In this document: positions 1-11,806 of the stretch, one piece after another
Position numbering within the stretch: the stretch's first letter is position 1
Layout of the letters: each line of letters starts with the position of its first letter
Assembly (NCBI GenBank): GCA_002794465.1
Contig: MTSL01000209.1
Location: 1-11,806 of the forward strand
Length of the DNA stretch: 11,806 nt
Direction of reading: 5' to 3'
From: Paramicrosporidium saccamoebae KSL3
Lineage: Eukaryota > Fungi > Cryptomycota
Translations under genes and position numbers: made by a program
Notes under the pieces: model-generated
Told to the model about the DNA's origin: nothing
The model's database searches: none
Seen by the model: the letters and a program-made list of their open reading frames with translations, nothing else

Positions 1-400
1 TGTCTTGTGCACAGTAATCCCAGGATAACTCAAATCGGGAGCGTGTCGACCCTGAAGACTGGAGCTGTGATTGTGCTGAGACTGAGCGCAACGGCTGCCT
101 CACCAGACTTACTACCCGCCCAGGATAAGCTTGCCGAGTCAAAGTGTAATAATTAGAGTTATGGCTGACCAAATAGGATTTGGATGGGCCAGCAGCCTGC
201 TTTGGCATGGACATTGGCCACACGCCATTGACCAGATCAACATACGCTTTTACTGGCATTCGACAATATAACCCTCACACAGCCTGGCGGAAGACAAAGA
301 TATTTTTTGTTACCGTTAGTATTTAATAGAGCATCGCCTGAAGCCGCAAAAATAGTATTCACTTAGACTACAGCTCAAGTGGAATAGCTATGGATGGCAT
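1..400 (-). pseudogene. B0: degenerate 5' exons of a B-family membrane protein gene (rest lies left of the window)
   Basis: 113-168 aligns without gaps to B3 exon 2 (SAITLIITL*LGKLILGG vs SARALLLLPWIAMLVLDD) with TGG->TGA at 139-141. An intron at 82-112 (GTAAGT...CTCAG, 31 nt) matches B3 intron 2. The exon 3 homologue has a -1 frameshift. Confidence 0.7.
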
Positions 401-417
401 TACTTAATGAGAATCAA

Positions 418-480
418 CCAATCACAAGTGGCCCCTTTCAAGATTGCAGGGGGGCCAATCATTCATAGTGATATATGTAT
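418..480 (+). promoter_or_regulatory. Putative A-gene promoter: two CCAAT boxes plus TATA-like element
   Basis: CCAAT at 418-422 and 455-459, then ATATATGTAT, then cacaccaacATG. The same arrangement precedes A2 (2916, 2952, TATA ~2968) and A3 (4995, 5031). Confidence 0.45.
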
Positions 481-509
481 CCCAATGTCAACATTCCACA
501 CACACCAAC

Positions 510-1097
510 ATGCGCATCCATGATAGGATACAATATCTTGCATTTGCAGCTCCTCACCCGTTTTACATGTATCTCCTTGGCCAAGCCCATCCTGTAGAAG
601 GGCTTGCGCCTGGGGCAATAATGATGCTCTTCATAGTACCCTTTTTCGCCCTCTTGGCTGTCCTGAAATATCGTGCTGCATATCACCGCAAAGTCTCAAA
701 GCGACAGAAGGGTGAAGGTGACATCGGATCTGGTTACAGTTTCAATGTATATCTGAGGGAGCTTTTTTTGTGGGAGGCAAAGGCGACCCCAGTTTATAGT
801 CCGGTTCTAAGTGCGGTATGGGACTTGCTATGCTCTCTTGTCATTTGGCTCCTCTTTCCACCTCGGTTTGCTGCTGCATACATAATGTTTGCGTGGTTGC
901 ATGGTATTCCTCAGGTGGCTATTACTGGGCGCAGCTGGGAGTCCTTCATTGGCACTGATAGCGTTGTATACAACTGTCGACGTTATAAACTTATCCGCGG
1001 GGGAGCGTACCAATTCAGGCTTGAAGATGAGAACCAAAATATTCTCTTTTATCCAGCAGCTGATTTCCGCGCACTAGTCCCACAAGGCAATGAATGA
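510..1097 (+). CDS. A1: uncharacterised membrane protein, 195 aa, ~3 TM, C-terminal MscS-beta-domain-like segment
   Basis: Start set at the ATG conserved in all three paralogs (cacaccaacATGCGCAT, MRI), not at the 444 start in the ORF track. About 55% identical to A3 by manual count. Shared motifs [10 protein letters not shown], FLWEAKxTPVYSP, WLxFPPRF. Confidence 0.85.
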   Translation: MRIHDRIQYLAFAAPHPFYMYLLGQAHPVEGLAPGAIMMLFIVPFFALLAVLKYRAAYHRKVSKRQKGEGDIGSGYSFNVYLRELFLWEAKATPVYSPVLSAVWDLLCSLVIWLLFPPRFAAAYIMFAWLHGIPQVAITGRSWESFIGTDSVVYNCRRYKLIRGGAYQFRLEDENQNILFYPAADFRALVPQGNE

Positions 1098-1205
1098 ATA
1101 TGGGGCTATTAAACCCGTAGTTGCGCAAACTTGTCTAAATTGCAGTTCTCGTCATGATCATGGCTCAAACCGACTCTTTTATACTGCTCCGCTACAATCA
1201 CTGGT

Positions 1206-1598
1206 TTATTTGATAATTTTGAGCAGGTTGGCGTCGAATAGTTCGCAGCGAACCGGCATTTCCGGTGTATGAAAAGGGTTCTTCAGGGCATAATCGGCAT
1301 AAATCTCATAGACCTTCCTGAGCACCGTTTCACATTCCCGTCCCACTGATGCGGTAAGCAGTATCTTCATTCCCGTGCCAGTCTGCAGACAATGCACGCT
1401 GAAGGGTTCCTCTCCACCCCACTCTATTGCCTCTACCCCGCCGCCGCCCGGCCCCACCCGTGCACTAATCGCATGCACACTCTGAAATGTACTGGCAATG
1501 ACCAAGTAGTCGTTGCTGGTGAGCTTGGGATGAAACCCAAAGGTCTTTTGATAGGCCAGCCCGCCAGCCTTGTTAACGAGCCACACCGAGTAGATCAT
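1206..1598 (-). CDS. TRS23: TRAPP complex subunit Trs23/TRAPPC4 (sybindin-like longin, short form without PDZ insert), 130 aa
   Basis: N-terminal MIYSVWLVNKAGGLAY and KLTSNDYLVIASTF; C-terminal LRKVYEIYADYALKNPFHTPEMPVRCELFD, characteristic of TRAPPC4. Confidence 0.93.
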   Translation of the reverse strand: MIYSVWLVNKAGGLAYQKTFGFHPKLTSNDYLVIASTFQSVHAISARVGPGGGGVEAIEWGGEEPFSVHCLQTGTGMKILLTASVGRECETVLRKVYEIYADYALKNPFHTPEMPVRCELFDANLLKIIK

Positions 1599-1605
1599 GC
1601 TACAG

Positions 1606-1830
1606 TTAACAATAAATATTTGGCAATATCAAAGCTGGTAATCAAGTTTTCGTTTTCATGCATAGTAAAAACCCGTAAATACACTCTATCTAACCTCTTG
1701 TCTCGTGAATATAGTCTCTCTCACCTTTCACGCTTACAGGATTTTCACCTCCTGTACGGAAAATAACCAGACTGCAATTATGGGTCACGACAGAACCGGA
1801 GCGCTTCTGGACCATTCCAGACGCAGATCA
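1606..1830 (+). pseudogene. Rab8 5' remnant 1 (promoter fragment plus switch II fragment)
   Basis: 1606-1626 gttaacaataaatatttggca matches 7235-7255 upstream of Rab8 (3 mismatches in 21). 1772-1828 translates LQLWVTTEPERFWTIPDA vs Rab8 [18 protein letters not shown]. Confidence 0.7.
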
Positions 1831-1899
1831 AGCTACTTTGAATAAAGTTGCAAAGATCATAGTGTTTATGTGGGATCTATAAAGAGATGTAATATCTAT

Positions 1900-2600
1900 T
1901 TAATTTCCCTTGTATGTTGCCACAACACGGGCAATGTTGACATTTCTTGCCAATATCGTGGTGACACACAAGGGAGTGTTCGGGAAGCCCATTGATCGTC
2001 CAAACTATAGATCCTGTGAACCGCAAAACTAGCAACCACTAACGTCCCACAATGCGTTGGATCCCATCTTCTGCAAACGACCTGCCTGTGAACAGATTGA
2101 TTGCAAGTTTCGATGCAAACTCTTTCCGAAAATCCAATTTACGATTCTTCAGTTCCGGCTCGAAACTTGTGTGCTTCACAAGTGAGATGAATTTCTTCGC
2201 AAATGCCTGCTCGGGCAGGCATTCTACGAAATGGGTCTTCAGAATCAGCAGGGCCAGGGAGATCCATCAGTGTCCTCAAGGTCCAGACCTTCCAAGCGCC
2301 TTTCCTAAGGGGTGCGCTTACTGCAAGCAAGAGCCACGCCCACAGCACGTGGACACTGGGGTCGCACTTAGCCATCTGGATAGCCGTACTCAGACATCCC
2401 ATGATGCAGACACCGAACTCAGCTATCAGTGTACCATACTCGGGATAGGCCGGCAGCTACAGAGCAGATTAGCAAGAGGGCTATGCGTACTCGTGACGTG
2501 CGAGAGATGGGAGAAAGCAAATGTTATTGCAATTTGAAACACGGATTGCGGGGGGGGGATCCACTGTTGAGCTTGTTTAGTACCAACCTAAAAAATTAAC
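1900..2600 (-). pseudogene. B1: frameshifted B-family membrane protein gene
   Basis: Homologous to B2/B3 exons 5-6, with the 34-nt intron 5 retained (gtacgc...gctaat...gtag). An 11-nt deletion follows AGL, a +1 frameshift lies near 2262 and a stop near 2040. The C-terminal remnant NVNIARVVATYKGN* ends ~1900. Confidence 0.85.
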
Positions 2601-2601
2601 T

Positions 2602-3014
2602 CAATATGGAAGTTTGCATGACTCGACCTGGAGGGCACCAAATACGGTAAGATATCCATGCCGCAATGCTGTGATTACAATGAGACCGTGTGTAAGGACT
2701 GCTTCACTAGTGTCACTACGTGTGCTGGCCACATGTCATCAATCAGATCAGCATACCGCTATTCAGCAGTATCACCCTCACATAGGCTGGCGGAAGACAA
2801 AGATATTCGTGTTGCAGTTGGTATTTGATAGCATCGCCTGAATCAGCAAATATGATGCTTCCTTTGAATAGTTTGTGTAAAATAGCTATGGATGGCAACG
2901 CTCAAAGGTAACCAACCAATCACAAGTGACCCCTTTCAAGATTGCAGGGGGCCAATCATTCATAGTGATATATATATCCTGATGTACACATCTCGCACAC
3001 ACCAACATGCGCAT
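2602..3014. repeat. Near-identical copy of 4681-5093 (B-A intergenic region)
   Basis: 8 differences in 413 bp by manual comparison; 2617-2926 is identical to 4696-5005 (310 bp). Confidence 0.95.
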
Positions 3015-3609
3015 CAGTGTCGAACTAGAAGAGTTCTCAATGATAGCACCAATGCTAGCTCACGTGTTTCTTTTTACCCAAATTAGCTCAGAGGAAGAGT
3101 GGGTGTCCGGGATAATAATGGCGCTTTTCGCAGTGCCTGCCCTCATCTTCTTGGGCATCTTGAAATATCGTGCTGCTTATCATCGCAAAATGCCAAAGTG
3201 GCAGCGTTTTGAAGGCAGCCTCAGACCTGGTAGCAATCTGAGTGTATATCTGAAAGAGATTTTTCTATGGGAGGCAAAAACGACCCCAGTCTACAGCCCA
3301 TTTCTAAGCGGAGTGTGGGATTCGCTTTGTTTTATTGTCATCTGGCTCCTATTTCCACCCCGATTTGCTCTGGCATACATAGGAATTGAGGGGTTTTATA
3401 GTGCCCTGTATACGATTGTGATTTTTTCCTGCATAGATCGCTTTGCTGAAATTGACAATTTTGTGTACAACCGCCGACGCTATACATTTGTCCGCAAGGG
3501 ATTATACCAGTCTGTGATTCAAGACGGAGATCAAAATGTTGTGTACTACCCAACGGTTGACCTCTATGCATTAGTTCCGCCCGGTAACCAATTAATACCA
3601 CACCAATAA
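3007..3609 (+). CDS. A2: uncharacterised membrane protein, 200 aa, paralog of A1/A3
   Basis: Intact ORF with the conserved start context and motifs. It is the most divergent copy in the N-terminus and after PPRF. Confidence 0.85.
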   Translation: MRISVELEEFSMIAPMLAHVFLFTQISSEEEWVSGIIMALFAVPALIFLGILKYRAAYHRKMPKWQRFEGSLRPGSNLSVYLKEIFLWEAKTTPVYSPFLSGVWDSLCFIVIWLLFPPRFALAYIGIEGFYSALYTIVIFSCIDRFAEIDNFVYNRRRYTFVRKGLYQSVIQDGDQNVVYYPTVDLYALVPPGNQLIPHQ

Positions 3610-3694
3610 AGCCATTTTTGCGCAAACTGGTATAAATTGTATTTTCTGACGCGGTCGCGGCCCATAAAGTTCATCGAAACATAACAGTCCATCG

Positions 3695-3820
3695 CTGCCA
3701 CCCTCACCCCAATTGTTCCCCATGAGTACAGGCATCGATTTTGAAATCTACACCATCTCCCTGGACGGCAATGATTCTGAAGTGTACCCGATCATCAGCC
3801 AAATGTTTCGTCGCTTGGAA
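3695..3820 (+). pseudogene. Rab8 5' remnant 2 (switch I/effector region)
   Basis: Translates TGIDFEIYTISLDG vs Rab8 [14 protein letters not shown]. 17-nt exact match accatctccctggacgg at 3752-3768 = 7461-7477. Confidence 0.85.
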
Positions 3821-3886
3821 TTGTTTTGAACATAACAGTATCGATAAAGCGATGAAATTTTTATTTAAGGTGTATACAGGTGTGGA

Positions 3887-4626
3887 TTAGTGAGCTTTGA
3901 ATGATTCTTTTCCTGTGTATACCGCCAGAACATGCGCAAAGTTGGCGTTCATTAGAAGGACCAATGGCTCGGAATCTTCTCGACCGTTCCAACAATATAC
4001 AAAAGAGCACCATGCAACGACGATCCAGCAAATCGCACCAAATCTTGTTGTCCTCTTGCAATCAAAGCCGTATGCAACCGCTACGGATGCGCAGTATGAA
4101 AAGTACGCAAAACCGAGCGCACCCCAGCCGAGCTGTACACTGGCTAGAACGGATGCCGTGCTCGCGCAAGCATTCAGAAAACATCTCAACCCGAGCTCCA
4201 CCCAAAAGCCCACTTTGCGATGCTTCAGATCCGGCTTGGGACATGTGCGTTCCACAAGTGAGATCAATTTCTCTATAAATGCCTGTCCGGGCAGGCGTTT
4301 TGTGCACTGGGTCATTAAAGTTGCCAGGACCAGGAACACTATCAGTGCCAATGAGGTCCAGACTTTCCCAGTGCCCCGCATGAAGGGTGCGCTTACTGCA
4401 AGCAGAAGCCACACCCATAACACGTGCACCCTGGGGTCGCGTCCGGCCATTTGGACGACCGTGCCCAGGCATGCCATTGTGCACACACTGAGAGCCTTGA
4501 TTACTAGATCATATTCTGGCCACACTTTGGTTAAGCCCGAGACTATAAACAGGTCAGTAGAAGATTTAGGGTACTAGCAATTTGTAAGAAGTGAGAAAAC
4601 AAACAAGCCGTGCCAATGTGGAACAT
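3887..4626 (-). CDS. B2: multi-pass membrane protein; minimal model 235 aa (exons 4626-4575, 4542-3887); 5' structure unresolved
   Basis: The last exon is 656 nt, the same length as in B3, with no stops or indels and roughly 45% aa identity. Intron 4574-4543 (32 nt, GTACCC...TACTGAC...TAG) absorbs both indels seen vs B3. Upstream FHIG...FSH is conserved through synonymous changes. Confidence 0.65.
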
Positions 4627-4631
4627 GAATG

Positions 4632-5093
4632 GCGGGAGACTCACTGCAGGGCATGTTAAATGCCAACACAAAGATTGTCCCAATATGGAAGTTTACATGA
4701 CTCGACCTGGAGGGCACCAAATACGGTAAGATATCCATGCCGCAATGCTGTGATTACAATGAGACCGTGTGTAAGGACTGCTTCACTAGTGTCACTACGT
4801 GTGCTGGCCACATGTCATCAATCAGATCAGCATACCGCTATTCAGCAGTATCACCCTCACATAGGCTGGCGGAAGACAAAGATATTCGTGTTGCAGTTGG
4901 TATTTGATAGCATCGCCTGAATCAGCAAATATGATGCTTCCTTTGAATAGTTTGTGTAAAATAGCTATGGATGGCAACGCTCAAAGGTAACCAACCAATC
5001 ACAAGCGACCCCTTTCAAGATTGCAGGGGACCAATCATTAATTGTATTATATATATCCTGATGTACACATCTCTCACACACCAACATGCGCAT
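4632..5093. repeat. Mosaic intergenic copy: 4681-5093 matches 2602-3014; 4632-4748 matches 6760-6876
   Basis: 4632-4748 vs 6760-6876 shows 5 differences in 117 bp, and 4632-4694 is identical to 6760-6822. Confidence 0.9.
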
Positions 5094-5670
5094 AAGTGAC
5101 AAGATACACAAGTTTTCGTTTGCAATCTCCCCTCCGTTTTACATTCATGTCCTCGGCCACATCCGCCCAGTAGAATTTGCACCTGGGATATTGCTGATGT
5201 TCTCCGTAGTGCCTTTTGTCTTTCTTTTGGCCATCCTGAAATATCGTGCTGCTTACCATCGCAAAGTTTTAAAGTGGCAGAGTTTTGAGAGCGGCGTCGG
5301 GTCTGACACTAGTTTCAGTGTATATCTGAGGGAAGTCTTTTTGTGGGAGGCAAAGACGACCCCAGTCTATAGCCCGGTTCTTAATGGATTTTGGGAATTG
5401 CTTTGTGGTCTCGTCGTATGGCTCATTTTTCCACCTCGATTTACTCTGGCCCATCTAATAATAGCGTGGATGTATGGCTTCCCTCAGATGTTCGCAACCA
5501 GACACAGATGGAGCCGTTTCACTGGCACCAGTAATTTTGTATATAACGGCCAACGTTATAGATATATCCGCTGGGGACAGTATCATTCCAGATTTGAAGA
5601 CAAAGACCAAAATGACATATATTATCCAACTGCCGATCTCCACGCATTAGTCCCGCAAGACCGGAGATGA
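5086..5670 (+). CDS. A3: uncharacterised membrane protein, 194 aa, paralog of A1/A2
   Basis: Intact ORF with the conserved start context and motifs. C-terminal [32 protein letters not shown]. Confidence 0.85.
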
Positions 5671-5769
5671 TTACTATACTAATGAAGTTACATTTGCGCA
5701 AACTCACTCGAGTTGCAACTCCCGCCGCTACTATGCTCCAGAAAATTCGCTATACACAGAACAATCCGT

Positions 5770-5923
5770 CATTACTGTCATCCACTCCCAGTCTTCCAGC
5801 ACAGTTACAGGCATTGATATCCATACAGTTGCCTTGGACAGCAAGCAAATCAAGCTGCAAATATGGGACGCGGCAGGATCGGAACGCTTCCCGGCCACTA
5901 CAAACGCACATTTCGTCGCTTGA
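5770..5923 (+). pseudogene. Rab8 5' remnant 3
   Basis: 5819-5923 translates [34 protein letters not shown], 20/31 identical to Rab8 [31 protein letters not shown]. It has a deletion after GID, no start and an early stop. Confidence 0.9.
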
Positions 5924-6012
5924 AATAAAGATGCAAATAACATGGTGTGGGCGAGATTCTGTGAAGTTGATAAGGAGATGAAATGTTTATATAATGTATA
6001 TAGAGACGCGGC

Positions 6013-7074
6013 TTACTGGCTCTTGACTGAGTCTTTTCCGGTGTGTGTTACCAGGAGATGAGCAAGGTTGGCGTTCAGCAAGACAATCAATGTCTCAGGA
6101 TCTTTATAACCGTTCCAACAATACCATCCCGTGCACCATAGGATCACAGGCCACCAAAATCCTGCGATGCGTTCGTTCCTATCTTCCGCAAAGCGACTTG
6201 CAACGAAACACGTCAGAAAAAAGGCGGCAGTCGGAATCAGGAGGCCCGCAAGTCCTAGTTGAATGTCCGAAAGGACTAGAGATCCGCTTGTAAAAAGGTT
6301 GACGGCCAACCTCAGCAGGAACTCTTGCCAAAAACCCAACAGGTAATTCTCAGGGTGCGGCCTGGGGCTTGCGCGCACTACCTGTGAGTTGAGCTTCTTT
6401 ATCCACTCTTGCCCAGGAAGGCGCTTGTGGAAATGGGACAGTATAACCACGATGGCTAGGGATGCTGCCAATGTCAACGAGGTCCACGCTTTCCAAGTGC
6501 CTCGCATGAGGGGTGCGCTTGCTGCAAGCAGCAGCCACACCCACAACACGTGGACACGGGGGTCGCACCTAGCCATCTGGATAGCCGTGCTCAGGCATCC
6601 CATGATGCAGAAACTAAGCACAGCTACCAGTACGCCATATTCTGGCCATATTTGGGCTAGGCCGGCAGCTACAAGGCAGATGAGTAAGAGGGTAGCGTGT
6701 ACTCATGATGTGGGAGAGGTGGGAAAAAGCAAATGTGACTCCGATATGGAACGTGGCTTGCGGGAGACTCACTGCAGGGCATGTTAAATGCCAACACAAA
6801 GATTGTCCCAATATGGAAGTTTGCATGACTCGACCTGGAGAGCACCAAATACGGTAAGACATACATGCTGCAATGCCCCATGAACAATGATTCCGAGGGA
6901 AATCAAATTGAGAGCGTGTCGACTCTGAAAGATGGGAGCTGGGATTGCAATGGGACTGAGTGCAAATACTGCTTCACTCACTAATCGTCCAAGACAAGCA
7001 TAGCGATCCAAGGTAGAAGTAGCAGAGCCCTCGCTGACTAATGGGGAATTGGATGAGCGTACCGAGTAGATCAT
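6013..7074 (-). CDS. B3: 6-exon, 306-aa membrane protein with ~10 hydrophobic segments (DMT/SLC35-like size and topology, unconfirmed)
   Basis: Exons 7074-7063, 7037-6982, 6955-6865, 6834-6798, 6771-6703, 6668-6013 sum to 921 nt, one open frame. Introns are 25, 26, 30, 26 and 34 nt, all GT-AG. Frames of exons 2, 3, 5 and 6 are supported by conservative or synonymous changes in the paralogous copies; exon 4 has only one informative site. Confidence 0.75.
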
Positions 7075-7267
7075 GTCGCCGATTAGTGGCGAATACTTGT
7101 TAGTGAAGACCCGAGAATCGGTGTGAGGCTTTTAATAGAGATGCTTTATTAAGGGATTCTTGATTTATATAGACACACTCTCTTGCACTCTTTTACGGAT
7201 GTAATAAGAAATCTTTGTTCCCTCATAACTGTGGTTAACGATAAATAATTGACATAAACACGACACG

Positions 7268-8073
7268 ATGGCGACTGGTTTTGCGGCGGGCAAGACAAAC
7301 TATGACCATTTAATCAAACTTTTGCTCATTGGGGACAGCGGTAGGGAGGGGGAGCGACTAAGGTGTAGGTGTGGGAAAGAGCTGCTTGCTGCTGCGTTTC
7401 TGTGACGACTCCTTCACGCCCAGCTTCATCACGACCATCGGTATCGACTTTAAAATCCGCACCATCTCCCTGGACGGAAAACGAATCAAGCTGCAAATCT
7501 GGGACACGGCGGGACAGGAGCGCTTCCGGACCATCACCAACGCATATTATCGGGGGGCGATGGGAATTCTGCTGGTGTACGATGTGACGGACGAACGGTC
7601 GTTCAACAATGTGCGGAATTGGATTCGGAATACGGAACAGTTTGCCAGCGAGGGTGTAGACAAGATTCTGGTGGGCAACAAATGCGACATGGCTGAAAAG
7701 CGGGTAGCAGGAGAGAATTGGGAGTCATATGTAGGCGGTGGAACGGGAGCGAGCACAGGCATTAGCCGACGAATATGGACTGTCGTTTCTGGAGACCAGC
7801 GCCAAGGCCAATGTCAATGTGGAGGAGGCATTTATGATGCTCGCTCGAGACATTAAGAAACGGCTAATTGACACGCAGAATGTTGTGAGCAACAAACCCC
7901 CTCCGACAGTCTCCTTGGAGAGCGATAGTACCATTGGTCGTCTCCGATCCGCCTGTTGTTGGGGCGGCACCTGCGAAGATTCATCGACAGCCGGATCAAC
8001 GGGCCCAGCTGGTTCAACGGTTCCAGTCGGATCGACCCCGCAGTCGCCGCAATCCACCCAATCTGCACACTAA
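7268..8073 (+). CDS. RAB8: Rab8/Sec4-family small GTPase, 248 aa, 3 exons (7268-7340, 7369-7703, 7735-8073)
   Basis: Motifs [14 protein letters not shown]|[45 protein letters not shown]. Introns of 28 nt (gtaggg...gactaa...gtag) and 31 nt (gtagca...atgtag) join the two ORF-track fragments. Confidence 0.95.
7990..8043 (+). repeat. 3 x 18-nt tandem repeat in the Rab8 tail ([18 protein letters not shown])
   Basis: gccggatcaacgggccca / gctggttcaacggttcca / gtcggatcgaccccgcag. Confidence 0.75.
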
Positions 8074-8112
8074 TTAGCTGTAAAGAATAAGATTGACTTT
8101 GTGTCACCCATC

Positions 8113-8647
8113 TCATGTGTGGTTTATTAGGAGTAGTCGAAGAATGTTTCGGTTCTCGATAAAGTCGTCTCTTGACAAGGGCGGTGGTTTGATAACAACA
8201 AGGCCCGCCGATCGGAGCAAAGTTGATTGTTCATCAGCCAACTTTTGATAATCGACCAACAATTGACAGTCAAAATCAGTCACCTTTCGGGTGGCCTCTT
8301 GGTGCAACAGTTGCACTTTGCTGGCATCCGACTCGACAGTGAGGATTTTGGTACAGGCGCTGATTAGTGCATTTCGTTCCTTTTGTCTCTCCTTCATCCA
8401 GCTGATCTGTGTCCTTCGCAAGGTCAAGGCCTGTTTTGGTATTTCTGGATGTTTTTGCACCAGTTGGGCCACTTTGTCGGCCGGACCAATGGGTGCTGCT
8501 TTGCGTTTCAATGGTATCAATTGGGGCTGTTCACATGGCACTCCTTCGGCTATTTCCTGTTTCACACGCTCAATGACCTCGGGGTCCAGAAGTGACAAGT
8601 CCTATAAATCAATAATGCCGCAGTCCTACTAAGGGTAGACTGTCCAT
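8113..8647 (-). CDS. Hypothetical helical protein, 168 aa, possibly DUF2458-like; exons 8647-8630 and 8601-8113
   Basis: The ORF-track start at 8598 is TTG. ATG 8647 plus a 28-nt intron (gtagga...ttatag) gives MDSLPL|DLSLLDP in frame. ERNAL...DFD...EQSTLLRSAGL...ILRLL resembles my recollection of the DUF2458 pattern; needs an HMM check. Confidence 0.75.
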
Positions 8648-8676
8648 CCTCACGCGACCGTCACCCTTGCACTGTG

Positions 8677-10767
8677 ATGCCAATGGAGCTGGGCCAGCCA
8701 CCGTTATGGCTTCCACAGCGTGACAGCAAAATGGAACACTTCCGGCAGGCCATTTGTGAACGTCATGGTGTGCAGCTCAAAACCTATCCGGACCTCCATC
8801 AATGGTCGATAAACAATCTGTCTTTATTTTGGCAGCATGTTTGGGAGTTTTGTGATATAGTCCATTCCCAGCCATTTGAACAGGTACACTTAGGGACGTG
8901 TTCACTAACAGAAAAGGTGGTGGACGAGGAAAAGACAATTGACAGTGTTCCAGAATGGTTCCGAGGTGCAAAACTCAATTTTGCCGAGAATTTGTTGCGC
9001 TTCAGAGACACGCGCACTGCAATCCTCTATGAAAGCGAGTTGGGCAGCGATTCCAGATCAATTTCCTACTTGGAACTCTACTCTGAGGTGGCCAAGGTGG
9101 CAGCCGCTCTACGGAGCAGTGGGGTGGGAGTAAATGACGTCATTGCTGCATTTGCAGGAAATGTGCCCGAGGTTGTCGTGTTTATGCTTGCAGCAGCCTC
9201 CATCGGGGCCATATTTACAACAGTACCGCCTGATTTCGGCGTAACGGCCGTCTGTGACCGTCTGAGTCAGACAAGTCCCAGGATAGTTCTAGCCAGTCCA
9301 TCAGTCTATTATAACGGCAAGGTCCACTGTCAAATGGACAAGGTCAACCAAATGGTCAGTCAAGTTTCGTCCATAGAAAAAATTGTCATCCTCGCCGACA
9401 AAGTAGCCAGTGATGGCCCTGAGGATGGCAAATTTGTGAAATATTCACAGTTCATCGAATCATTTGCCGTGGATGCCCTTTCTTTTACACAACTGCCGTT
9501 TAATCATCCACTGTATATTCTGTACTCTTCAGGAACTACGGGGAAACCAAAATGTCTGGTGCATTCCGCGGGCGGTACTTTGATCCAGCATCTAAAAGAA
9601 CACATTCTCCATGGCGATCTCACGCGTTCCGATGTCTTTCTGCAATACACCAATATTGGTTGGATGATGTGGCATTGGATGGTCTCAGTCCTAGCCGTAG
9701 GCTCCACCATTGTACTTTACGAAGGATCACCCTTTAAACCCGAGACTATACAACTGTGGAGACTGATTGAAAAGCATCAAGTTACCAGATTTGGAACAAG
9801 TGCAAAGTATATTCAACATCTCCAAGAGTGTGATACCAAGAAAAGTGATGGCGGCGAGGGCAGTGAGAGTGGTGAAAATGGTAAAAGTGGGACTAGGACT
9901 ACATCTACAACTACAAACGCGACTACGCCTGCAACTACAACCGCTCTCATTGCATCGTTTGATATTTCTTCCTTGTTAACTATCTATTCGACTGGATCAC
10001 CTCTCAGTCCTAGCGATTTCCGCTTTGTCCACGATAAGATCAAGGCAGATTTGCAAATCTCATCTATTACTGGCGGAACTGATATCATTTCCCTATTTGG
10101 CGCCGGAAATCCAATGTTGCCAGTCCACGCCGGCGAGATTCAATGTCCTGGTTTGGGAATGGCTGTCAAGGCTTATTCTGATGCAGGGGAGGAAGTATTG
10201 GAGACGCCAGGCGATTTGGTTTGCACTCGTCCATTCCCGTCAATGCCCGTGGCGTTCTGGAATGACTCGGATGGATCGCTCTACCGGAACTCGTACTTTG
10301 GTCGCTTCCCCCAGTGTTGGCATCACGGCGACTTTGTCAAATTCACAAAGAATGGCGGATTAGTAATGTTGGGACGGAGTGACTCGACGTTGAATCCCGC
10401 AGGGGTGAGGTTCGGTAGCGCAGAATTGTACAATGTGGTGGCCCGGTTCCCAGAGGTCAAAGATTCATTAGTGGTTGGTGTTAGAAAGCCAGACGAAAAT
10501 GACGAGCGTGTCATCATGTTCCTGCAGACTGATTCGGGAATCGTCTCTGACGATCTCGCGATGCAAATCAAGAAGCAGATTAGATCATTGCTGTCGGCAA
10601 GACATGTGCCCGCTCTGATCTTGGCCACCCCTGCCATCCCTTACACACTCAACGGTAAAAAGGTCGAAGTGGCCGTCAAGCGCATCCTCTCCGGCAGCCC
10701 CGACATTACCACCGTGGGACTCGCAAATTCTGAATGTCTTGCCTTCTACCGCACCCTTTCTCTGTAG
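8677..10767 (+). CDS. AACS: Acetoacetyl-CoA synthetase (ANL adenylate-forming superfamily), with a probable in-frame intron at 8884-8916
   Basis: Motifs PEWFRGAKLNFAENLL, YILYSSGTTGKPKC, SITGGTD, GRSDSTLNPAGVRFGSAE, TLNGKKVE. First ATG is 8677 (8674 is GTG). The 33-nt segment gtacac...cactaac...aag removes 11 extra residues, giving PFEQ|VVD. Confidence 0.95.
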   Translation: MPMELGQPPLWLPQRDSKMEHFRQAICERHGVQLKTYPDLHQWSINNLSLFWQHVWEFCDIVHSQPFEQVHLGTCSLTEKVVDEEKTIDSVPEWFRGAKLNFAENLLRFRDTRTAILYESELGSDSRSISYLELYSEVAKVAAALRSSGVGVNDVIAAFAGNVPEVVVFMLAAASIGAIFTTVPPDFGVTAVCDRLSQTSPRIVLASPSVYYNGKVHCQMDKVNQMVSQVSSIEKIVILADKVASDGPEDGKFVKYSQFIESFAVDALSFTQLPFNHPLYILYSSGTTGKPKCLVHSAGGTLIQHLKEHILHGDLTRSDVFLQYTNIGWMMWHWMVSVLAVGSTIVLYEGSPFKPETIQLWRLIEKHQVTRFGTSAKYIQHLQECDTKKSDGGEGSESGENGKSGTRTTSTTTNATTPATTTALIASFDISSLLTIYSTGSPLSPSDFRFVHDKIKADLQISSITGGTDIISLFGAGNPMLPVHAGEIQCPGLGMAVKAYSDAGEEVLETPGDLVCTRPFPSMPVAFWNDSDGSLYRNSYFGRFPQCWHHGDFVKFTKNGGLVMLGRSDSTLNPAGVRFGSAELYNVVARFPEVKDSLVVGVRKPDENDERVIMFLQTDSGIVSDDLAMQIKKQIRSLLSARHVPALILATPAIPYTLNGKKVEVAVKRILSGSPDITTVGLANSECLAFYRTLSL

Positions 10768-10892
10768 CCAATAAAATATGGCCATTCTGATTGGTTGCAT
10801 CTGTAATTAAGTATCAATCTGATGAGCCATGACCATAAGAAGTATATTAGACATTTGGGGATAAATCGGACCCCACCGCACTTTGGTTTAGG

Positions 10893-11806
10893 ATGATATT
10901 GCATAGGCTTGTCGCCGGCTTGGCGAGCATACTAGCCGTTAATGCAGCCGTATCGGTATCAATTGAACCAAGTAATAATCACGCTGTAGAGAGATCCCAA
11001 CTCGGCGGCAAACATTGACGTGTTCCAGACTACCCACATTGACTTGTCGTGGCATGTGGATTTCGCTACCTCGAAAATCAAGGCCGTCGCAACGCTAACT
11101 TTGAAACGTATCGGTGAGGGCGACCAATTGATCTTGGACTGCTCGGGTTTGGAGATTCGCAAAGTCACAGAGAGCTTCAAGTCCTTAAATATTGCTCTGG
11201 AACATTCCAACAATCCTTCTGCAGGCCGTTTTGGGGGAGCACTTACCATCACTCTTCCATACGAGCGTGACATCTATACCATTGTCATCCATTATGATAC
11301 CACTGACAAGAGCTCGGCTCTGCAATGGCTTACTCCTGAACAGACGCTCGGGAAAGAGCATCCGTATTTGTTCAGTCAGTGCCAAGCCATCCATGCAAGG
11401 ACTATGCTTCCGTGTCAAGACACGCCTGCTATCAAGGCCACTTACTCGGCATCCGTCAGCGTTCCAAAGCCACTGAGCGTCGTAATGAGCGCTAATCGTC
11501 GACAGGAGTGCCCGCTCAGAAATCACACTCTTCATGCATTTGACTTTGAACAAACCACACCCATTCCAGCATATCTGATCGCCATTGCAGTAGGAGACAT
11601 TCACCCGAGAGAGATTGGGCCGCGTTCCAGTGTATGGTCCGAAGCGGGGAACCTGGAGGCCGCTGCGGAAGAGTTTTCAGAAACTGAAACGTTTATCAAG
11701 ACTGCTGAGTCACTTGTTGGGCCGTATGTTTGGCAACGCTATGACATTCTAGTTCTCCCACCCTCATTTCCCTATGGCGGTATGGAGAATCCCTGCTTGA
11801 CATTTG
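10893..11806 (+). CDS. LTA4H: Leukotriene A4 hydrolase / M1 aminopeptidase, 5' part (runs off the window); exons 10893-10955 and 10990->11806
   Basis: Motifs DPNS..N, LQWLTPEQTLGKEHPYLFSQCQAIHAR, PCQDTP, YLIAIAVGD, YDILVLPPSFPYGGMENP. A 34-nt intron (gtatca...ctgtag) joins exon 1 in phase 0. Absent from the ORF track, presumably because there is no stop in the window. Confidence 0.92.

Follow-up and report, generated by a model that had tools for sequence, protein, structure and literature searches.

The locus considered here raises one question: do two unassigned membrane-protein genes, termed A and B in what follows, that have been amplified side by side in an intracellular parasite, form a functional pair, or does their linkage reflect a shared history and nothing else? 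The genes occupy the left part of a 21-kb contig (MTSL01000209.1, assembly GCA_002794465.1) of Paramicrosporidium saccamoebae, an obligate intranuclear parasite of amoebae positioned near the base of Microsporidia (PMC5701793). The stretch analysed, referred to as the window, comprises positions 1-11806 of this contig (11,806 nucleotides, nt). An earlier note, made from the letters of this stretch, had proposed a two-component module under birth-and-death evolution, and the evidence assembled below, from other loci, from selection, and from gene and promoter structure, makes it reasonably probable that A and B represent a membrane module of two proteins, specific to this clade and inherited together, whose copies have multiplied by tandem duplication and undergo birth and death.

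An array of A-B cassettes

The cassette consists of gene A followed, tail to tail, by gene B, and three such units of 2.1-2.5 kb are arranged in tandem in the window, with start-to-start spacings of 2497, 2079, and 2126 nt across positions 1-7074, far above chance expectation in the direct-repeat analysis. From left to right, the order is IG0 (IG for intergenic region), A1, Bet5, a Rab fragment, the B1 pseudogene, IG1, A2, a Rab fragment, B2, IG2, A3, a Rab fragment, B3, IG3, and Rab, and the array extends up to the contig end at window position 1. The copies of A and B and the intergenic features are the following (aa, amino acids; TM, transmembrane; ORF, open reading frame):

1-509, no strand: IG0, upstream of A1 and also upstream of an off-contig copy, B0; ends in the A core promoter
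510-1097, plus strand: A1, 195 aa, intact; predicted N-terminus outside and three TM helices, then a beta-rich C-terminal stretch of about 50 aa
2040-2542, minus strand: B1 pseudogene, with an intron remnant at 2457-2490
2602-3014, no strand: homogenised B-A intergenic tract, copy 1
3007-3609, plus strand: A2, 200 aa, intact
3887-4626, minus strand: B2, 235 aa, intact; B profile E = 2.6e-106
4681-5093, no strand: homogenised B-A intergenic tract, copy 2
5086-5670, plus strand: A3, 194 aa, intact
6013-6826, minus strand: B3; B profile E = 3.6e-104
6827-7267, no strand: IG3, between B3 and Rab; contains a non-coding ORF, 7074-6784

Linkage and co-duplication of A and B

The first line of evidence is the persistence of the pair at other loci, which we followed by matching the six-frame ORFs of every fetched locus to profiles of A and B. 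Beyond the window, the two genes are neighbours at six fetched P. saccamoebae loci and on three metagenome contigs, while at a seventh locus of the genome the contig stops shortly after A, and the gene orders are these:

L001 (MTSL01000150): A, A, B, A, B fragment
L005 (MTSL01000040): A, B
L008 (MTSL01000166): B fragment, A, B
L010 (MTSL01000077): A, B fragment, A, B, A, B fragment
L009: A, 470 nt before the contig end
L002 (metagenome): A, B, A
L004 (metagenome): A, B
L007 (metagenome): B, A

The proposal that A and B were duplicated together holds beyond the window, the two being adjacent at every examined locus with enough contig, also in uncultured relatives. The orientation needs to be restated: the head-to-head arrangement (B<- ->A) described earlier is true inside the array only, while the pairs judged outside arrays (L004, L005, L007) are tail-to-tail (A-> <-B), and a convergent B follows A at L001, L002, L004, L005, L007, L008, and L010. 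Among the loci examined, no intact B was found without A, and A without a trace of B was found only at a contig end (L009). Identities among eight A copies correlate with those among their partner B copies (mirror-tree r = 0.87, permutation p = 0.004), showing that the pair was duplicated as a unit, with the signal dominated by one close clade versus the rest. Birth and death of copies, also part of the earlier proposal, are visible in the dead B1 and in the B fragments of L001, L008, and L010. No terminal inverted repeats were found flanking L005 and L008. The earlier note had reasoned that A and B being unlinked, single-copy members of known families in relatives would point to a passive segmental duplication, and this is not what the relatives present. 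With A and B adjacent throughout, it is probable that the two function together.

Family distribution

The A/B family was found in a narrow lineage only. A word-indexed search with A3 returned six proteins only, and an exhaustive hidden Markov model search with A retrieved 38 clusters (63-334 aa, most of 100-225 aa) among 1.84 billion representatives, with nothing else below E = 0.001. The named A members that were looked up all belong to P. saccamoebae (PSACC_02190, PSACC_00357, PSACC_02498, PSACC_02503, PSACC_01406, and PSACC_01069), and the remaining ones come from Joint Genome Institute (JGI) metagenomes or Logan assemblies. Likewise, the searches with B retrieved only P. saccamoebae proteins (PSACC_02192, PSACC_03511, PSACC_00358, and PSACC_02499) and metagenome proteins. 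In the P. saccamoebae genome the cassette is spread over at least seven loci; seven loci hold at least 13 copies of A and at least 12 copies or fragments of B, mostly arrayed, and PSACC_02503 is an additional A copy.

Neither family had been recognised from the sequence by the earlier note, and neither is recognised now, with no match to Pfam families, PDB sequences, or folds. Pfam searches with single A and B proteins and with all family members returned nothing recurrent beyond scattered noise, the B profile gave a noise match only against PDB sequences, and Foldseek comparisons of the AlphaFold2 (AF2) models of A and B with PDB gave no match below E = 0.1. The A and B locus tags are not listed in the supplements of the genome paper, and no account of the family emerged from the literature searches.

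Gene A

Gene A conforms closely to what had been proposed. The three copies are intact (ORFs 510-1097, 3007-3609, and 5086-5670), each begins with MRI, and they are 47-56% identical in protein (about 55% had been estimated) and 63-71% identical in DNA. According to hydropathy and the AF2 secondary structure, the protein starts with a variable N-terminus of about 30 aa leading into TM1, continues with a conserved basic loop that carries a 10-residue motif and YLRExFLWEAK, followed by a hairpin of TM2, FPPRF, and TM3, and ends with a four-strand beta-rich tail of about 50 aa containing VYNGRRY and YYPTxDLxGLIP. From the positive-inside rule we infer that the conserved loop and the tail are cytosolic, and that the variable N-terminus is external. 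Of the motifs reported earlier as fixed, the 10-residue motif, FLWEAKxTPVYSP, and DPxVHVLW are present, and the first two are still recognisable in the wider family; YCWNG is limited to B2 and B3 and does not qualify as a family motif. The public annotation captures little of this. A1 is the sole copy annotated correctly in GenBank (P0004), A3 has no annotation, and P0030 (334 aa, 2888-4577, plus strand) is a chimera of pieces of A2 and antisense B2.

Gene B: a revised model

Gene B requires a more substantial revision. In place of the multi-exon gene with about ten TM helices proposed earlier, the comparison gives a protein of about 235 aa, for which 6-8 membrane helices are predicted with the support of hydropathy, and which is encoded by two exons, a 52-nt first coding exon and a single large exon, separated by a 32-34-nt phase-1 intron. 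Full-length homologues (P0007, 254 aa; P0010, 247 aa; the L010 copy, 242 aa) begin with M-L/F-x-I/F-G and a short hydrophobic helix. In B2, exon 1 (4626-4575), the intron (4574-4543, 32 nt), and exon 2 (4542-3887) are readily delineated: the start (ATG at 4626, MFHIGTACLFSHFLQIA) is at the start position of the full-length homologues, in a frame different from that of the large exon, and removal of the 32 nt (GTACCC..TACTGAC..TTTATAG) joins both frames exactly. B3 follows the same plan (exon 1, 6754-6703; intron, 6702-6669, 34 nt; exon 2, 6668-6013), and its frame is open only after intron splicing.

In six B copies, the intron lies at exactly the same phase-1 position, with a length of 32 nt in B2, 34 nt in B3, B1, and the copies of L002 and L007, and 33 nt in the copy of L006, and its signals are GTAYRC, a branch site of the TGCTAAC/TGCTGAC/TGCTAAT type, and YAG, the branch site of B3 being weaker (CTTACTCAT). 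As its length varies, as the frame is restored only by splicing, and as the neighbouring Rab gene has an intron of 28 nt, we take this segment to be a real spliceosomal mini-intron, predicted from the sequence. In P0010 (L006), the 33-nt intron is in frame and was read through by the ORF caller.

These models alter the status of most B copies. B1 is indeed dead, lacking an ATG, carrying at least two frameshifts, and having lost its 3' third (the last approximately 90 codons). B2, earlier suspected of truncation, is intact, with its own ATG at 4626. B3, which had been considered intact, has lost the canonical ATG (ACG is found instead) and requires an in-frame ATG 72 nt upstream (6826), which would give a protein of 259 aa. 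As to B0, listed as a second dead copy, its coding sequence is absent from the window and only its upstream intergenic region is present: positions 1-190 of IG0 are non-coding and homologous to 6860-7058, and, as six-frame ORFs gave no B-profile match to the left of position 2042, B0 itself must lie off the contig. The last exons of B2 and B3 (656 nt) do align without an indel, as reported earlier.

Two candidates did not survive. One is an upstream B exon (7074-6865, within the ORF 7074-6784), which proved non-coding, its homologue at 1-190 having stops in all frames and 1- and 5-nt indels; IG1 and IG2 lack 63 nt of the region of this ORF. Another is an enumeration of GT..AG pairs to rescue a multi-exon model of B3, which was uninformative and is superseded by the comparative data. 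In GenBank, B2 is not annotated as such, and PSACC_03511 (P0008, 357 aa, 5731-7074, minus strand) is a chimera of the non-coding upstream ORF, B3, and an antisense Rab fragment.

Selection on A and B

Both A and B are under purifying selection. The ratio of nonsynonymous to synonymous substitution rates (dN/dS, by the method of Nei and Gojobori) is 0.21-0.60 for A, mostly about 0.3, and 0.14-0.39 for B, while dS is about 0.8-1.3 between the paralogues in the window and higher elsewhere (up to about 3). With dS near saturation and dN/dS low, the duplications must be old and both genes must have been maintained. The corresponding ratio of proportions, pN/pS, was calculated in 15-codon windows pooled over all pairs, and is 0.2-0.3 in the conserved cores and 0.6-0.85 in the most variable segments, namely the A N-terminus, the A TM3 region, and B around FAEDRNER. 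Diversifying selection on such segments, as suggested in the earlier note, does not emerge from this analysis, with pairwise dN/dS at 0.15-0.45 overall, the maximal 15-codon pN/pS values being 0.84 (A) and 0.83 (B), and none exceeding 1, in a test weakened by the saturated synonymous sites. The variable segments fit relaxed constraint as well as they fit diversification.

Homogenised promoter regions

The intergenic regions present a very different pattern. Over their 413 nt, the tracts 2602-3014 and 4681-5093 show only 7 differences (98% identity), with an exact run of 310 nt (2617-2926), and the identity falls to about 50% eight nt inside the A coding sequence. Two further examples come from assemblies independent of the window. 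At L002, the upstream identity is 97% (1-297 versus 2286-2582) against 73-80% in coding sequence, and at L008, the identity is 90-97% over the B 5' end and upstream (5088-5814 versus 7390-8058). Taken together, such tracts reach 90-100% identity between adjacent units, against 50-80% for the coding regions of these units, and their edge at the A start codon is abrupt. A homogenised upstream tract was not seen at L010. With synonymous sites near saturation, selection alone cannot produce an intergenic identity of 98-100%, and the pattern is most simply explained by gene conversion that does not reach beyond the shared promoter region. Such conversion would keep the B-A promoter region nearly identical while the coding regions stay diverged.

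The tract 2602-3014 contains the A core promoter, together with the distal part of a conserved block at the 5' side of B. This promoter consists of two CCAAT boxes and a TATATATA element about 30-40 nt before the ATG, all in the last approximately 120 nt upstream of each A (for A2, CCAAT at about 2915 and 2952, TATA at about 2966-2977), and the same CCAAT/CCAAT/TATA arrangement is found in the metagenome relatives L002 and L007. The block upstream of the B start, of about 100 nt (6780-6860 and 4650-4730, minus strand), is 92% identical between B2 and B3 and recognisable in L002, thus better conserved than the coding sequence, yet in no reading frame. This block also holds a CArG-like element (CCATATTGG) and a short upstream ATG. 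No Rfam families were found in window positions 1-7400.

Passengers and flanking genes

The units carry, or carried, more than A and B, and the genes to the right of the array bear on its history. These features are as follows:

1206-1598, minus strand: Bet5/TRAPP sybindin-family gene, 130 aa, single exon; Pfam PF04099, E = 6.7e-34
1746-1828, plus strand: Rab pseudogene fragment 1, homologous to Rab exon 2 (7463-7547)
3716-3771, plus strand: Rab pseudogene fragment 2
5801-5914, plus strand: Rab pseudogene fragment 3, matching Rab residues 46-85 at 60% aa identity
7268-8073, plus strand: functional Rab GTPase gene next to the array, from which the Rab fragments derive; first intron of 28 nt (7343-7370)
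8113-8647, minus strand: ORF without a Pfam match, 153-161 aa, between Rab and the acyl-CoA synthetase
8683-10767, plus strand: acetoacetyl-CoA-synthetase-like gene
10942, start: M1 peptidase

Between the 3' ends of A and B, each unit retains only a decayed piece of the 5' part of Rab, from exon 2, which implies a duplication breakpoint inside Rab. Bet5 is intact inside unit 1, between A1 and B1 (the GenBank model 1206-2402, 217 aa, fuses it to the N-terminus of the dead B1), and units 2 and 3 lack about 476 nt at this place. A Bet5-like fragment is found in the same place, between B and A, in the uncultured relative L007 (790-966). The Bet5 start (1598-1585) and the start of the non-coding ORF near Rab (7074-7061) share the same 14 nt (ATGATCTACTCGGT), possibly the trace of a Bet5 copy since deleted; beyond this 14-nt identity, no Bet5 remnants were found in units 2 and 3, and no extended Bet5 similarity was found beside Rab. 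A plausible history would be that tandem duplication of an ancestral B-A-Bet5-Rab segment began from a breakpoint within Rab, that the redundant Bet5 and Rab copies were subsequently lost, and that the array grew by unequal crossing-over of the unit of approximately 2.1-2.5 kb.

The genes to the right of the array (Rab, the ORF 8113-8647, the acetoacetyl-CoA-synthetase-like gene, and the M1 peptidase) are single-copy. The acetoacetyl-CoA-synthetase-like protein has a Gly/Ser/Thr-rich low-complexity insertion (…GGEGSESGENGKSGTRTTSTTTNATTPATTTA…) within its AMP-binding domain, at about 9780-9950 of the window (plus strand).

Weighing the alternatives

Several findings weigh against the reading of A and B as a co-inherited membrane module. 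The exact 310-nt repeat sits in a short-read assembly, built from 80-nt Illumina reads (PMC5701793), and assembly collapse could be the source of part of the exact identity. The AF2 models are of low quality, with a predicted local distance difference test (pLDDT) score of 55 for A (8-sequence alignment) and of 45 for B (6-sequence alignment; all-helical, about nine helices). B evolves much faster than A, with identities between loci of 16-24% versus 28-38%. Finally, A1 stands beside the dead B1, two A genes stand in a row at L001, and L001, L008, and L010 carry B fragments; with such A copies devoid of an intact partner, A may not need a B in cis, or several A may share a single B.

The alternative that withstands the data best, though we consider it unlikely, is passive co-duplication, with A and B as unrelated orphan neighbours amplified together and their linkage reflecting a shared history and not a shared function. 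All of the cassette copies can indeed be derived from one ancestral unit by duplication, the units also carried unrelated passengers (Bet5 and the Rab fragments), and many B copies are dead beside an intact A. However, the passengers decayed fast, while A and B kept open frames and a dN/dS below 0.5, at dispersed loci as well, despite divergence to about 30% (A) and about 20% (B) identity; nor does any intact B stand alone, as seen above.

A second alternative, for which the data leave rather little room, is that of a variant, host-exposed family, whose surface or host-interface proteins would diversify under host pressure, as do multicopy small-TM families in other intracellular parasites. 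The obligate intranuclear parasitism of the species (PMC5701793) is in agreement with such a role, as are the clade-restricted, multicopy nature of the family, the location of five of the seven loci within about 11 kb of a contig end, the conserved or homogenised upstream sequence beside strongly diverged coding sequence, and the fact that A varies most in its N-terminal tail, predicted to be external, and around TM3. Yet pN/pS exceeds 1 in none of the 15-codon windows, neither a signal peptide nor a known export motif was recognised (no dedicated signal-peptide predictor was run), and no telomere repeats were found at the locus ends. These contig ends may also be assembly breaks in repeats.

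Still more doubtful is a selfish two-gene element, a poison/antidote-like membrane pair spreading because its loss is harmful. Linked membrane-protein toxin/antidote pairs are known, one example being wtf of Schizosaccharomyces pombe, which is one gene with two isoforms and not two genes, and another being peel-1/zeel-1 of Caenorhabditis elegans. A and B resemble these systems in being tightly linked, fast-evolving multi-TM genes, with the pair expanded in copy number and dispersed to many loci, and with many copies degenerate. However, no homology to wtf or to peel-1/zeel-1 was found, nor sequence similarity to known driver families such as WTF, and neither A nor B has a recurrent Pfam match.

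The last alternative, that A is a degenerate fragment of the membrane domain of an ABCC-type ABC exporter, can be treated as refuted: it arose from a match of a shallow, 8-sequence A profile to residues 1044-1134 of human ABCC3 in PDB (E = 1.1e-4), with a plausible-looking alignment over the coupling-helix region, but this match was discarded as it vanished (E above 10) with the deeper, 28-sequence profile, none of the 28 A members matches ABC_membrane (PF00664) in Pfam at E up to 1, the Foldseek comparison of A turns up no ABC protein, the cassette is devoid of any ABC gene, and A has three predicted TM helices in about 195 aa and no nucleotide-binding domain, while an ABC exporter combines a six-helix transmembrane domain with a nucleotide-binding domain.

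Returning to the module that we favor, its mode of action can be pictured as follows. A and B would be subunits of one membrane complex, in which the polytopic B would form the core and the small A would be its partner, with the conserved loop and tail of A turned to the cytosol, and the complex would act at a membrane of the intranuclear parasite, in a role for which copy number and sequence diversity would matter. A bolder proposal, and a long shot on the present evidence, is that A and B constitute a new heteromeric membrane machine of the Paramicrosporidium lineage, possibly a channel or transporter or a system of self- or partner-recognition, with matched allotypes and converted promoters, or else a selfish poison-antidote cassette.

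Comparison with known systems

Microsporidia possess clustered, species-restricted families of proteins with signal peptides or TM segments, such as the large gene families of Nematocida and the subtelomeric families of Encephalitozoon. A and B share many traits with these: they belong to an intracellular parasite of the same broad clade, are limited to a genus-level lineage, are clustered, in many copies, and near contig ends, are membrane-associated, and show rapid divergence and pseudogenes. In the microsporidian families, however, a single gene is amplified, while the A/B unit is a fixed pair of different membrane-protein genes, and no sequence or fold similarity between these families and A or B was found.

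Another example is presented by the small multi-copy 2-TM families of Plasmodium, of the rifin/stevor/Pfmc-2TM type. These resemble A and B in conserved TM helices combined with variable segments, in conserved upstream regions, in birth-and-death evolution, and in gene conversion. Unlike them, and with no homology to them, A has three TM helices and a conserved, predicted cytosolic beta tail, the variable parts of A and B do not have dN/dS above 1, and the partner B has no counterpart there.

A third comparison is with the mechanosensitive channel MscS, whose chains are the top Foldseek matches of the A model, at a non-significant E = 0.12, a TM-score of 0.27, and a root-mean-square deviation of 14 Å, on a model of pLDDT 55. 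The model shares with the MscS protomer the order of elements, three long helices followed by a beta-sheet tail. However, the tail of A is about 50 aa versus more than 150 aa, there is no sequence similarity, and no A member matches the MS_channel family in Pfam.

Overall, the features by which lineage-specific families are recognised are found in A and B: a narrow lineage, multiple, clustered copies, and predicted TM domains. A/B is a clade-specific expanded parasite gene family, here in the form of a fixed pair of orphan membrane-protein genes.

Significance

P. saccamoebae stands at the base of the microsporidian radiation, with a 7-Mb genome and only about 3,750 genes, and A and B, with more than a dozen copies each, are among its larger lineage-specific inventions. 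The family has gone unnoticed because most of its copies are unannotated or mis-modelled, and the corrected gene models given here are directly usable for re-annotation. The locus also serves as a natural example of tandem birth and death with passengers, of probable gene conversion confined to a shared promoter, and of conserved spliceosomal introns of 32-34 nt. If A and B indeed form a complex at the parasite surface, they would be candidates for dealing with the host nucleus, and if they form a heteromeric machine, a new two-component system would be operating where an intranuclear parasite meets its amoeba host.

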